A stretch of DNA of 64,000 nt from Pocillopora damicornis (GCF_003704095.1 NW_020845558.1:682001-746000); one strand, 5' to 3'; counted from the stretch's first letter, positions 35,767 through 53,001 are shown. Notes: a model not told the origin generated them from the sequence alone. Program-made: numbers and translations.

Positions 35767-36342
35767 ATGTCTGGAAGAAGAGGTTTTTGTCTTGTTTTGA
35801 CTGGGCTTGTACTCTTGCTATTAGAGTTATCATCGGCTAAAGACGGTAGGTTATTCGTTAGTAAAAGCCAACCAAGTCTATCTTGCATCTTTTATCTTCA
35901 GTATCGTCAGAATCTTAGAAAGATAACTGCTCTAATAAAGTAAATATTCAAATTAGTAACAAATCTCCCATTAGAGGCCATTACTTCTCACTTTCTTCCT
36001 TCTTTTATCCAGTTTTAAAATAATCGTTTTCATCCACTTTTTACAATATTTGTTGCGTTTTCAAAATCCCGGTGTACCCCCAGCCTAAATTTCAGAAGGT
36101 TACTGAAAATAGAACTTAGCTCAATGCTCTCATTCCACCCCTTGCGTCACTGAAGATAAAAGCAAATTGTTTAAGTCATGCCAAATGTACACGTAGTGGT
36201 AAACTGTGCATTATTACGGTCGTTTCTTTATAGTGGTATCCTTTCATCATATTACATTGTATCTTGACATTTATTGCAGATTGTCAGAAATTATTAGACT
36301 TTGAGGGGAAATCACAGGAAAACTGCCTGAGACGTATACCAG
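35767..36342 (+). CDS. Chondroitin sulfate ABC lyase-like gene, copy 1: 5' part only
   Basis: Signal-peptide exon 35767-35845 (MSGRRGFCLVLTGLVLLLLELSSAKD|gtagg) splices to 36280 (ttgcag|AT TGT CAG AAA... DCQKLLDFEGKSQENCLRRIP), then a gap. Confidence 0.8.
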
Positions 36343-39300
36343 NNNNNNNNNNNNNNNNNNNNNNNNNNNNNNNNNNNNNNNNNNNNNNNNNNNNNNNNNN
36401 NNNNNNNNNNNNNNNNNNNNNNNNNNNNNNNNNNNNNNNNNNTGCAATTATTTTCAGACTTTTTCAGTTTATAGTTTGATCCAGACTCTAAATCAAATTG
36501 GTAAAAACTAGAGCACGATTAGCCTTCTGATTGGCTGAAGGGAGCCAGGTTATGAGCTTGTAACTCAGCTCCGACAAATGTGGTCAATGAAGTCGTCGGC
36601 GAAGACGAGAAAGAAAAGTTTCTGTGGGCCTTGAGGTAATGGCGCACCCTAAAAATGGAATCTTAAAAGGTTTCGGGACTTTTGACAAACGCGCACCTGG
36701 ACTCTTACCTCTGACTTAGTAAAGTCTCTCTTTGTGTTTTCAATTTTTCTCTCTCTTGGAAATCTTTTGAACAATGACGAGCTACGTAAAAGGCACTGTC
36801 GACTCAAATAATAATAATTGTTGATAACGAGAGGACAAGCTGTTTGTGAACTAACCCTGGGACGCTTAAGTACATGTGCTGTCAGGATACTAAATTTGTT
36901 TTCCAAAATGGCAGCGTCCTTATTCTAGTTTTGAGCATATTTAAAGACAATTTTGGGGTGATTGTAGATTCCGTTTTGGAAATCATTTTTTAAACATCCT
37001 TCCTATGAACAAAAAAAAATGCTGAACGATTTCACTCGGACATGAAAGGCAGGCTGTTTTTATTTGTTCCAACCCAGTCAATTCTTAGGAATTCTGCCCT
37101 CAAGCTTGGGTATGCCAAGGTTAATCAATAAAAAACTCCTAACCTCTAGAGAACTTTCTTGTAGAATATATATTCTTCTCGGCTGATGTATAGGCTCTAT
37201 TTTAATCTTATGTTGTCTCTAGCATTTCCAGTGCATTTTACAGACACGAAAAGTGGTTGCCAATTCATATGAGATATAAGAGTTTAAGGTGGAATGGTCC
37301 TTTACTGCAGGCAGTGGTTATAGCCACAGAAAAAAGGTAGAGAGGGATATTTGCATTAGAGGAAATAAGTAAGGTAATATCTCATTCATTTGTCAAAACC
37401 TCTGCTTTGAAATGCAGGGTTGCTCGTCTAATTTGGAGTTTGCTGGTTAGTTTTATTGTACTGTTGAGGTTAGTAGACTAACTCGAATACCACGTGCAAA
37501 CGGGAAGCGCCAGGAGTCTGATCAGGAACATTTATGTCACTCTCTGAGGTTTATCGCACGATAATTAAGCCCTATCACAACGGTGAAGGACTCATCACTC
37601 AAAGGGGAAAAATAAATGTGCGGTCTTGCAGCACGTAACAAACCAAGGATCACAAGACTTGCATAAGAATTTTAAGATAATCTAACAGGTCTAAACAATT
37701 CCTAAATATTTAGCCGGAACATTCCTAATCTCAGTAGTTCCCAATCACTTCTAAGTTTAGTAGTTCATAACAGCTGTCACTTTTGCGCTAAACGTGCACT
37801 GTTGTTTTGTTGTCCTTCTCCTTAGCTATGAACAAGATGTGGCGGCGCCCGTATCATATATTTGAGCGCATTGAAAGATTGTCATGAGATCCTTCATATG
37901 AAGAAAAAAATACTATTCGATTTCACCTGCACCAGAAATATTTTTGGTAACAAAGGCGGCTTGTTTTTAACCCTGTCAATTGTTTGGATTTGGATCATAG
38001 TTTTCTGCCCTCGAGCTAGAGTAACATATTATTTTCGTGATACGATTTTCTAGTCAATAAAGAAGATTTCAAAAAGTCTAATAAGTCACCGAAAGCGTTA
38101 TACGGCTTTCACAGAGTTGTTATCTACAGGTTTATTTCATAACTAGACAGCATTTCATCGTAATGTGGACCACATTGCTTTTTAAAGAGATATGTAAGTA
38201 TGTATTCGAATTAAATTAAACTTGAAATGATTATATACAATAAAACTATCCGCTAACAATTTTTTTTTGATTCGAAGATTCAGATGGTAGTCATTGTATA
38301 GCAGGCATAACACAGTTATACGCGATTCATCCAAGAGGATTGAATCCCATGCACCGAATTTCGTAATCCTGCATACAAGAGTCCTACCATGCTGTTGTCC
38401 TAAATTTTTAAGACAGATCACGATCATGCCATAATAATTGGAGTAACAGACACTGAATCTAAGATCTAATTCAAGGAAAAAGGCAAGAAAGACGAACTCT
38501 TAACAATTTCCTAGAAAACTTCAATGAAGATTATTTCTAGGCGAAAATCATATTCTCGGCTGATATGCAGGCCCTGTCTTTATCTAATGCGGTTTCCGGG
38601 ATCAATTACATTTTCACAGACATGAGAAGCGTTTTTCAGTTCAAGTCGAGGTACGTTGAGAGGTCGCTAAGAGTAAGGTGAAATTTTATTTTTTAATGGC
38701 AGACAGAGATTCTAGCTACAGAAAAATGGTAGAGGAGGAAATTTGTGTTAAAGAAAGGAATTAAGATAACATCTCATTCACTGGTCACAATTTCTGCCGT
38801 GAAAAGCGGGTTGCTCGTTAAATTTGGAGTTTGCTAGTTAGCTGTCACTTTTTTACGAACTGTTTATTGTTGTAATGCTGTCATCCTCCTAATAAGTAAA
38901 CAGAGATCGTATCAATTATTAGCAACCTTAGGAAAATTTCGTTAAACCCGCTTCCAGTCGACTCTGTCTATCGTTGTGAGCTTTATGTTAAAAAGAATTT
39001 GAAAGAGTAAAACTTTGTGGATGGAAAAGTTCTAAGTTAATTTATTTTTCTTGAAAGCAGCTGTTCGTCAATTTTTCTAGATCGTTATGGTGAACCTGTG
39101 ACGTAATTCCTGCTTTCACGCTCTTCGATTCCTTTGACAAACCGTCTGGTAAAAGCAGATTTAGGAATAGATTTATTTTTGTCATCTCACTCGTAGCCTG
39201 AGCTCTTTTGTATCAGAAGCTGGACATCAATTCACATACAAGGCAAACATCTTCCAAGCATTTCAATAATTTTCTCCGCTGTCATACACTCCTGATTTCA

Positions 39301-39504
39301 TTTAGGTCCACCCTATAGTCCTGTTAAAGTAAATTTAAAGATTGGTAAATTTTGTCATTTCGCTCACTCATAACCTCTGCTCTCTGATGTAAGAAGCAGG
39401 TTTTTGATTCATAACCATATCTCTTTCTTTCATTTTGATCGTTAATATCTGCTGTCATCCCCTCATGATTCAATTGTCTCGCAGTAGATTTAGTAATAAG
39501 TTGT

Positions 39505-39652
39505 TGTACAACCAATCGGAGAACGACCGTATTGTCATTATTAGATTGCTCAACAATTTCCACGGAATGATAGTTTGCTTTAAATAGAGCTCAACTTGGA
39601 ACCTAGAGAAGGACGACAAACGGAGGGTTCCTCTCTGTCATTACGGGTAAGT
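39505..39652 (+). promoter_or_regulatory. Putative core promoter and non-coding first exon of the lyase gene
   Basis: CCAAT (about 39512), TATA-like tttaaata (about 39579) and a GTAAGT donor at 39647. The same arrangement is conserved upstream of the other two copies (about 35260-35400 on +, 47770-47915 on -). Confidence 0.5.
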
Positions 39653-51618: not shown

Positions 51619-52303
51619 TCAACAATTTATTTTGGTCAGTTTAACTTCCACGCTGAATCCGTTCTTCAGATTGGCAAAGACTAGTTTGTTTCCTCGGCTC
51701 GGTTTCTCAGTAACTGTTCTAATCACTCGAACCCTTGGCTCGTAATTAGTTGGAGAACCATGTACCTTGGGTAGTTCTGGAAGAGTTGTGCTCACAATGC
51801 GTGCCAAGGTGACTTCAACTTGGATCTCATCGCTTTCTATTCGAAACATTTCCCGAGCTTTGATATCGTCGGAGGTTCGCAAGACTTTTGAGCCAGGGAA
51901 ATTCAGGTCGGGGTAACTAATGCTTAAGTAAATCTCCTGAGTGTTTTCTTCCGCCATAATCCTGCATTGTCTGCTCACTCCCGAGACAATCCCCCAGGAA
52001 GGAAGAGATGAGGTTTCTTGGAAAACAACATAACCGTATAGTGGAACCAAGACATGATCACGTTCAGGAGATCTTTCAAATCGGACCACATGAGCCTCAC
52101 TGTCTTGCTTAATAACCCTGTATAGCTTAAGTGACTTATCAAATTGTTGTTTATTCCAATAATAGTCAGCAGAGCCTTTATATGAAGGAGTATTTATGTG
52201 AACTGCGTACTCGTAACTCCCATCAGGTGTACTGTGCTCCAGCCAGGCGGTACCGTAGGTGCCACTGGATGGTTTAGCTGAGGGCGTTTGCGAGTTTTGT
52301 GTT
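51619..52303 (-). CDS. C-terminal region of a chondroitin ABC lyase-like paralog
   Basis: TAWLEHSTPDGSYEYAVHI, KQDSEAHVV, YGYVVF, LSISYPDLNF, NGFSVEVKL; similar to the PL8 C-terminal beta domains. Confidence 0.85.
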
Positions 52304-52403
52304 NNNNNNNNNNNNNNNNNNNNNNNNNNNNNNNNNNNNNNNNNNNNNNNNNNNNNNNNNNNNNNNNNNNNNNNNNNNNNNNNNNNNNNNNNNNNNNNNN
52401 NNN

Positions 52404-53001
52404 CGCAGTTCACATAAATACTCCTTCATATAAAGGCTCTGCTGACTATTATTGGAAAAAACAACAATTTGATAAGTCACTTAAGCTCTACAGGGTTATG
52501 AAGCAAGACAGTGAGGCTCATGTGGTCCGATTTGAAAGATCTCCTGAACGTGATCATGTCTTGGTTCCACTATACGGTTACGTTTTTTTCCAAGAAACCT
52601 CATCTCTTCCTTCCTGGGGGATTGTCTCGGGAGTGAACAGACAGTGCAGGATTATGGCGGAAGAAAGCACTCAGGAGATTTACTTAAGCATTAGTTACCC
52701 TGACCTGAATTTCCCTGGCTCAAAAGTCTTGCAAACCTCTGGCGATATTGGAGCTCGGGAGATGTATCAAATAGAAAGCGGTGAGATACAAGTTGAAGTC
52801 ACCTTGGCACGCACTGTGAGCACTACTCTTCCAAAAACGCCCGTAGTGCACGGTTCTCCAACTGGCTACGTGCCAAGGGTTCACGTGGTCGAAAGAGCAA
52901 GCGGCGAGAAACCAAGCCGAGGAAACAGGCTAGTCTTCGCTAATTTAAAGAACGGATTCAGTGTTGAGGTGATATTGACGAAAATAACTTGTGATCAATA
53001 A
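52404..53001 (+). CDS. C-terminal region of another chondroitin ABC lyase-like paralog
   Basis: Close paralog of 51619-52303, ending ...VILTKITCDQ*. AATAAA at 53152-53157. Confidence 0.85.

Follow-up and report, generated by a model that had tools for sequence, protein, structure and literature searches.

A stretch of 64,000 nucleotides (nt) from the genome of the coral Pocillopora damicornis (GCF_003704095.1, NW_020845558.1:682001-746000; 'the window' denotes this whole stretch) contains, between 35.2 and 53.0 kb, what is quite probably a local cluster of paralogous genes encoding secreted lyases of the chondroitinase ABC type. At least three distinct paralogs are present, appearing as five to six partial genes in the scaffold as it stands; RNA shows that the minus-strand copy, at least, is expressed and that its splicing follows the prediction. 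The gene model stands as correct, and how many copies lie here is uncertain, clouded by the assembly. Reading these genes as domesticated bacterial-type lyases is sound, but the family is phylum-wide and already annotated. Our wider interpretation, put forward tentatively and rated just short of an even chance, is that cnidarians have kept, multiplied and expressed a bacterially derived ABC-type lyase since before Anthozoa and Medusozoa split. With such a lyase they would be able to cleave glycosaminoglycans (GAGs) by beta-elimination with an enzyme of their own, used in corals from secretory clusters (here beside a phospholipase A2 (PLA2) gene) for extracellular digestion or for the remodelling of matrix or cnidocysts, and the replacement of a catalytic Arg in medusozoan members would hint at changed chemistry in that branch.

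The lyase pieces were mapped by six-frame open reading frame (ORF) listing and by tblastn with the full-length protein P0007 of Stylophora pistillata (1195 amino acids, aa). The copies, lettered A to E, are laid out along the scaffold as follows, residue ranges being those of P0007:

35230..35560, plus strand: promoter and 5' untranslated region (5'UTR) unit of copy C (CCAAT, TTTAAATA, CAG/GTAAGT, TGCCTTCGGCAAAG/GT), from three-way alignment and pattern search.
35767..35845, plus strand: 79-nt signal-peptide exon of copy C (MSGRRGFCLVLTGLVLLLLELSSAKD), followed by GT, from sequence and translation.
36280..36342, plus strand: first 63 nt of copy C exon 2 after the AG, cut by the gap 36343-36442; 70-73% identical to A and B.
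36443..37522, plus strand: 3' flank of a plus-strand lyase gene with its coding part lost in the gap; homologous to 51311-50242 on the minus strand (80% over 1126 nt, self-BLAST).
39490..39830, plus strand: promoter and 5'UTR unit of copy A, from alignment and pattern search.
40172..40250, plus strand: 79-nt signal-peptide exon of copy A, GT at 40251, from sequence.
40707..41766, plus strand: N-terminal part of copy A exon 2, Lyase_N at 1.7e-17, cut by the gap 41767-42410 (Pfam; tblastn piece 40709-41764, plus strand, residues 31-390).
42411..42574, plus strand: isolated 164-bp contig between two gaps, carrying the third catalytic-region sequence and out of scaffold order (tblastn piece 42411-42575, plus strand, residues 601-655).
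42675..43674, plus strand: catalytic stretch (residues ~381-702) of a plus-strand copy's exon 2, Lyase_catalyt at 3.3e-45, donor GT at 43675 (Pfam; tblastn piece 42676-43677, plus strand, residues 381-712).
43954..44162, minus strand: start of copy B exon 3, with the catalytic Glu in VWDFE, cut by the gap 43854-43953 (PDB alignment; tblastn piece 44156-43953, minus strand, residues 714-781).
44163..44739, minus strand: copy B intron 2, 577 nt, GT..AG, phase 0, from RNA joints and sequence.
44740..46766, minus strand: copy B exon 2, Lyase_N and Lyase_catalyt, with His535/Tyr543/Arg596 in open-frame numbering (Pfam, RNA; tblastn piece 46764-44737, minus strand, residues 31-712).
47185..47263, minus strand: 79-nt signal-peptide exon of copy B (MSGRGGFCLFLTGLALLLVEFTSAQD), from sequence and the RNA joint 46766/47185.
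47638-47266, minus strand: 5'UTR intron of copy B, ending 2 nt before the ATG.
47600..47940, minus strand: promoter and 5'UTR unit of copy B, its non-coding exon ending at 47639, from alignment and the loose end of an RNA contig of run X2.
51622..52302, minus strand: C-terminal 227 residues (about 970-1194) of copy D, stop codon 51619-51621 (ORF listing; tblastn piece 52302-51631, minus strand, residues 970-1194).
52405..52998, plus strand: C-terminal 198 residues of copy E, stop codon 52999-53001 (ORF listing; tblastn piece 52405-52983, plus strand, residues 1002-1194).

The cluster comprises three lyase N-termini, three distinct catalytic-region sequences (46766-44740 on the minus strand, 42675-43674 on the plus strand and the 164-bp island 42411-42574 on the plus strand; pairwise nucleotide identity 91-92%) and two C-termini (52302-51622, minus strand, and 52405-52998, plus strand; 89% identical). 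A preliminary description of this DNA had counted at least as many of each, and sequence, tblastn and self-BLAST agree with it. The copies are constrained, with ratios of nonsynonymous to synonymous substitution rates (dN/dS) of 0.18-0.29 at a dS of 0.20-0.26: 0.29 for copy A exon 2 against copy B, 0.18 for the plus-strand catalytic piece at 42675-43674 against copy B, and 0.29 for the C-termini of D against E. By these ratios, the window copies are under purifying selection.

The gene plan consists of a CCAAT/TATA-like promoter, a non-coding exon, a 79-nt exon, a 2027-nt exon, a phase-0 intron and a last exon. All three copies have the same 5' arrangement: a 79-nt exon with the ATG, a GT donor, an intron of 418-456 nt, an AG acceptor and exon 2 in phase. 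The upstream unit of CCAAT, TTTAAATA and CAG/GTAAGT has a mean column identity of 86% when the three copies are aligned. Downstream of it the element TGCCTTCGGCAA is found at 35516, 39780 and 47641 (three matches against 0.17 expected), and the element TGCCTTCGGCAAAG, likewise downstream of the unit, is followed by GT in copies B and C. The preliminary description had reported both a separate signal-peptide exon with GT-AG introns for each N-terminus and a conserved promoter and 5'UTR unit, and both hold in all three copies. Exon 2, 2027 nt long, encodes the N-terminal and catalytic domains, and the last exon encodes the Lyase_8 and C-terminal domains. Exons 1 and 2 add up to 2106 nt, and intron 2 is therefore in phase 0; the end of the long open frame (past ...KIMST) is intron read-through.

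Contigs from RNA sequencing in four studies, oligo-dT and poly(A) libraries included, were placed on 43954-47400 and are approximately 99% identical to copy B. The joint 46766/47185 is present in run X2, and the joint across intron 2, 44160-44162/44738-44740, is present in X2, X7 (poly(A)) and X8, that is, in three studies. Both are GT..AG joints on the minus strand, and RNA depth is zero within both introns. Of the two junctions predicted earlier, 47185>46766 is seen in an RNA contig, and 40250>40707 of copy A has only sequence homology as its support. One X2 contig reaches beyond 47267 in the upstream direction, its sequence there matching the TGCCTTCGGCAA exon end; this implies that the 5'UTR holds a third intron, at 47638-47266. 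A second X2 contig extends 612 nt past 43954, and the transcript therefore goes on where the scaffold has a gap. In a single contig of run X3, four additional letters (GATG) stand between 44162 and 44744 at the joint; it probably derives from a paralog whose exon 2 ends slightly differently.

The 689-aa open frame of copy B matches Lyase_N (PF09092) at 3e-16 and Lyase_catalyt (PF09093) at 8e-44, both above the curated cut-offs; copy A and the plus-strand catalytic piece match PF09092 and PF09093 at 1.7e-17 and 3e-45, respectively. The Lyase_8 part is represented in the window by residues 714-781 and 970-1194 only, which give no Pfam match on their own; the remainder falls into gaps. A gap-free paralog on contig C473 of the same genome does match Lyase_8 (PF02278), at 2.9e-26, and can be aligned with residues 611-992 of the Proteus enzyme, chondroitinase ABC I. 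The only real matches in a PDB sequence search were the chondroitinases ABC of Bacteroides thetaiotaomicron (2q1f, 2e-21) and Proteus vulgaris (1hn0, 3e-9, and 7eip). The same three structures, 2q1f (E 5e-25), 7eip and 1hn0, are the best fold matches of an AlphaFold model of the exon-2 protein (675 aa; predicted local distance difference test 92.4, predicted template modelling score 0.93, helices over residues 180-610). In a HMMER alignment H535, Y543 and R596 of the 689-aa frame stand opposite His454, Tyr461 and Arg514 of 2q1f, and the Glu of VWDFE in exon 3 stands opposite Glu628 of 2q1f and, after a one-gap shift, opposite Glu653 of 1hn0. This His/Tyr/Arg/Glu quartet is the catalytic set according to published mutagenesis, and the family corresponds to PL8 of the CAZy classification. 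Both the catalytic equivalents proposed beforehand and the assignment to the bacterial chondroitinase ABC type are thus corroborated.

The coral family has the domain order of the bacterial enzymes 2Q1F and 1HN0/7EIP – Lyase_N, Lyase_catalyt, Lyase_8 – as well as their aligned catalytic residues, at an identity of 15-18% in structural alignment. The coral gene differs from the bacterial ones in being interrupted by introns, in carrying its signal peptide on an exon apart and in being multicopy in an animal genome; it has no adjacent sulfatase or operon partners, and the genome search discussed below found no GH88 for it to act with. Across 30 aligned sequences His and Tyr never vary, and 26 of the 30 retain the Arg. 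The Arg column (R590 in the alignment, R596 in the open frame) is occupied by Ala in Hydra vulgaris P0289, the medusozoan-like P0154 and P0287, and Paramuricea P0133, with Lys following the Ala in the three medusozoan proteins. The Ala could mean a shifted or altered active site in that branch.

How many genes the cluster contains, and in which order, depends on the assembly gaps, none of which is continuous or in frame within the lyase cluster. Across the gaps 41767-42410 and 42575-42674, the flanks ending at 41766 and starting at 42675 overlap by 33 nt in gene coordinates with four mismatches; the two contigs therefore belong to different paralogs, and 42675-43674 is not the continuation of 40707-41766. 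The gap 36343-36442 connects codon ~20 of exon 2 with a 3' flank, and about 4 kb of gene is lost there; the gap 43854-43953 connects intron 2 of a plus-strand copy with exon 3 of the minus-strand copy; and the gap 52304-52403 connects two diverging C-termini. We rejected genes read across the gaps, the flanks either overlapping and differing or sitting on opposite strands. We also rejected haplotype duplicates: dS between the copies is 0.20-0.26, and introns are 71-86% identical.

The scaffold shows a plus-strand two-gene unit, mirrored by a minus-strand two-gene unit and followed by one further C-terminus, with all joins at gaps. In self-BLAST, 36443-41766 is homologous in reverse, over its whole length, to 51311-45707 (80-86% identity), and 34763-36342 is 70-74% identical to the upstream and 5' parts of both other copies. 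We consider it an even call whether this inverted array of five to six copies is partly a scaffolding artefact, the 8.35-kb contig 43954-52303, which lies between two 100-N gaps, being misoriented. Flipping this contig puts all pieces into gene order as a plus-strand head-to-tail trio (C; A with C-terminus D; B with C-terminus E). The full-length reverse match speaks for such an error, and the counts suit three genes, N-termini and catalytic sequences numbering three each and C-termini two, with one more hidden in the gap 36343-36442. However, 40707-41766 and 42675-43674 overlap yet differ, so that misplaced pieces are needed even after flipping, and contig C473 carries a gap-free head-to-head pair of complete lyase genes with two coding exons each (14499-18542, minus strand, and 23483-27682, plus strand), from which it follows that true inversions happen in this family. 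We arrived at the even rating by setting this real head-to-head pair against the character of the P. damicornis HiRise assembly, which according to its authors lacks high-identity repeats (PMC6208414).

The family extends well beyond this genome. A word-index protein search returned 193 relatives, the named ones all from stony corals, and an exhaustive search of 1.84 billion representatives returned 562; named family members come from Stylophora, Oculina, Montipora, Nematostella (four clusters), Actinostola, Xenia, Paramuricea and Hydra. The preliminary description, which spoke of the one animal, needs correcting here: the gene is not confined to this coral, and the same family, with NCBI names, occurs across corals, anemones, octocorals and Hydra. 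Any transfer therefore predates the cnidarian radiation, and we infer that Anthozoa and Medusozoa inherited the family from their last common ancestor. The proteins named 'chondroitin sulfate ABC exolyase(-like)' in NCBI and UniProt (Nematostella vectensis A7S592, Oculina patagonica and others; the names are automatic) fall into the same clade with 100% support and have the same architecture as the window family where the full length is known; the window copies are further paralogs of these, broken by assembly gaps.

In a FastTree tree of the long relatives, 27 form a clade with 100% support, with named members from Nematostella, Actinostola, Xenia, Paramuricea, Stylophora, Oculina and Montipora and a basal pair that is related to a Hydra vulgaris protein. 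For the LG+G4 and C20 mixture-model trees 80 named bacterial loci were added, and the cnidarian clade has 100% Shimodaira–Hasegawa (SH)-like support in all three trees (FastTree, LG+G4 and C20); an unfinished LG+F+G4 ultrafast bootstrap run gives the same cnidarian/bacterial bipartition. Stylophora P0007 comes out as the sister of the window copy (support 92-97, 65% identity), and the C20 mixture-model tree divides the cnidarians into Medusozoa (100) and Anthozoa (88). The LG+G4 tree places Verrucomicrobiota/Planctomycetota as sister to the cnidarians with a support of 96. The bacterial relatives come from at least eight phyla at 26-38% identity, and those sampled sit in polysaccharide-utilisation loci with sulfatases, SusC/D and GH88. 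Among the 150 best of the 1.84 billion representatives, most of them nameless, no non-cnidarian eukaryotes were recognised, and the sampled unlabelled clades were all bacterial. The coral intron 2 is missing from a medusozoan-like contig, where a different intron follows Lyase_N; intron positions differ among the coral genes, this contig and the coral C290 subfamily, which has extra introns. An intron-poor ancestor fits, since the positions are not common to the lineages.

Most likely, the gene was taken from a bacterium before the cnidarian radiation, a conclusion that is plausible and not proven. Of the horizontal transfer claimed in the preliminary description, the integration into the host stands (introns, neighbours, composition, RNA); nesting within bacterial PL8 was not recovered, there being no stable sister and no root. 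Likewise, the phylogeny proposed as a check yielded a single cnidarian clade apart from the bacteria but did not place it within them. The PVC bacteria (Verrucomicrobiota, Planctomycetota and kin) are not established as the donor, being sister to the cnidarians under one model only.

Several points weigh against this account of the cluster, its function and its origin. No lyase copy in the window is complete, each being broken by an assembly gap, and residues ~782-969, most of Lyase_8, were found nowhere in the window by tblastn with P0007. By eye only, the product of the 79-nt exon was judged a typical signal peptide, with a basic start, a hydrophobic core and small residues at the cut. The trees are unrooted with SH-like supports, the lyases of sponges and choanoflagellates lie outside the data set, and the sister grouping with Verrucomicrobiota/Planctomycetota is absent from the FastTree tree and lost under C20, where the bacterial backbone is unresolved. 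Being unrooted, the trees are equally compatible with an old eukaryotic gene. Finally, GH88 is the usual bacterial partner, an unsaturated glucuronyl hydrolase acting on the lyase products, and a search of the whole genome for it (PF07470) found no match, with the controls Bacillus subtilis, B. thetaiotaomicron and Haloferax volcanii all matched; this weak negative speaks against a full catabolic role.

Old vertical inheritance is in our estimation unlikely, though it deserves serious consideration. Here choanoflagellates and animals would share a GAG lyase, from whatever source, by descent from their common ancestor; sponges and cnidarians would have retained it, most other animals would have lost it, and the cnidarian lineage would have received no transfer. 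It is the interpretation of Richter et al. in a 2017 bioRxiv preprint (10.1101/211789), who detected Lyase_8 proteins in 18 of the 21 choanoflagellates, with sponges and cnidarians as the only animals to have them, and who read GAG lyases as inherited from the choanozoan ancestor. It also predicts what our trees show, namely all cnidarians on one side of a single branch, and one of the two lyase genes of Salpingoeca rosetta failed the ortholog filter for choanoflagellate-unique genes (PMC7971027). However, the choanozoan comparison used Lyase_8 alone, a domain that is also found in AC lyases and hyaluronate lyases, and the Lyase_8 section is missing from the published eLife version. The S. rosetta lyases have themselves been called candidate bacterial transfers (PMC7971027), and the survey of the 150 best representatives described above recognised only cnidarians among eukaryotes. 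We prefer the early bacterial transfer.

A loss of lyase activity, with the proteins now acting as secreted binders of GAGs, seems improbable to us. The Ala at the catalytic Arg position in Hydra, two medusozoan-like contigs and Paramuricea indicates that loss or change of chemistry occurs in the family; the window copies, by contrast, retain His, Tyr, Arg and Glu and bear the marks of purifying selection noted above. Bacterial contamination, or a recent and unexpressed bacterial insertion, is hardly conceivable, although the family elsewhere is overwhelmingly bacterial: the preliminary description had already considered these to be animal genes, and contamination is rejected because of the spliced RNA (three GT-AG introns with contigs from oligo-dT and poly(A) libraries) and the animal neighbour genes on the same scaffold (for G-protein-coupled receptors and PLA2), while the GC content of 36-42% in the lyase region is like that of the rest of the window, and the closest relatives are coral proteins at 44-92% identity as against 38% or less for bacteria, in a clade made up of cnidarians only.

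On the bacterial-transfer reading, the gene would have been acquired before the Anthozoa–Medusozoa ancestor, would then have gained a signal-peptide exon and lineage-specific introns, and would have multiplied repeatedly in corals. The enzyme would be secreted and cleave chondroitin or dermatan sulfate by beta-elimination, the conserved His/Tyr/Arg/Glu set presumably yielding unsaturated oligosaccharides. As to its role we can offer guesses, the likeliest being extracellular digestion of prey or mucus GAGs by gastrodermal gland cells, next the remodelling of mesoglea or calcifying matrix, then chondroitin processing in cnidocysts, and last a venom spreading factor. Cnidocyst formation uses chondroitin.

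The general view is that animals cut GAGs by hydrolysis. Animal hyaluronidases of the Glyco_hydro_56 family are likewise secreted and depolymerise chondroitin and hyaluronan, acting in matrix turnover, fertilisation and venoms; their fold is unrelated, and they work by hydrolysis and not by the beta-elimination of lyases. If our reading is true, a lyase family that is conserved across the phylum, expressed and multiplied would constitute a second GAG route beside hydrolysis. Such a route could matter for the biology of coral matrix and skeleton, for the formation of cnidocysts, for feeding and for venom, and the enzyme would be a chondroitinase ABC adapted to eukaryotes, of a type with experimental use in nerve repair. 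In the literature searched we found no characterisation of a beta-eliminative GAG cleavage route in any animal and, beyond a remark in 10.1101/211789, no functional study of cnidarian chondroitinase ABC proteins; a paper on transfers in Amphimedon makes no mention of lyases. The presence of the family in public annotations was already known, and its occurrence in cnidarians had been remarked on; added here are an RNA-supported gene model, a single clade of named members across Cnidaria, the recognition that the local assembly is scrambled, and the question of origin.

The closest eukaryotic parallels are the GAG lyases of S. rosetta (PMC7971027), which are eukaryote-encoded chondroitin lyases of the PL8 type, and the bacterial chondroitinase EroS, a PL8-type enzyme that acts on a eukaryote and induces mating in S. 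rosetta. Both act on the host's own chondroitin sulfate. The published comparison of choanoflagellate and cnidarian lyases is by the Lyase_8 domain only (10.1101/211789).

Elsewhere in the P. damicornis genome there are at least 12 further lyase loci, on contigs C305, C473, C196, C1708, C290 and C3912, including complete genes on C473 (two) and C196 (one) and several copies on C1708. The C473 pair offers this genome's best starting point for modelling or expressing a full-length protein. The local expansion proposed in the preliminary description is upheld, the copies having multiplied both locally and genome-wide. Contig C305 carries the ortholog of P0007 together with two decayed copies with frameshifts and stops (63976-66787 and 87328-88915, the first lacking residues ~285-626 through an internal deletion), and the family thus also sheds copies. 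The subfamily on C290 (162944-169448 and 202158-206128) is about 50% identical to P0007, and its catalytic region is split into exons of residues ~433-526, 513-596, 593-814 and 820-908, where the window copies have a single large exon.

Self-BLAST of the window also revealed a repeat of 150-230 bp with copies 72-86% identical at 33024-33251, 34092-34247, 37878-38031 and 49202-49431. Miniature inverted-repeat transposable elements had been suggested to surround the lyases and were not confirmed: a genome search with 33024-33251 gave copies on this contig only, two of them among the four places just listed. As far as the search could see, the repeat would belong to the local duplicated unit and not to a genome-wide mobile element.

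To the left of the lyases lies an array of five intronless paralogs of a rhodopsin-type receptor, at 13598-14608 (minus strand), 17440-18105 (plus), 19790-20782 (minus), 24031-25014 (plus) and 32031-32612 (plus), two of the five being cut by assembly gaps. The three that were scanned, 13598-14608, 19790-20782 and 24031-25014, match 7tm_1 at 1e-22 to 3e-25. On the right-hand side, at a distance of 6-7 kb, the lyase cluster is followed by two minus-strand exons of a secreted PLA2 with the motif CCQIHDSCY, at 58774-58968 and 59610-59819 (Phospholip_A2_1 at 2e-12 and 3e-4).

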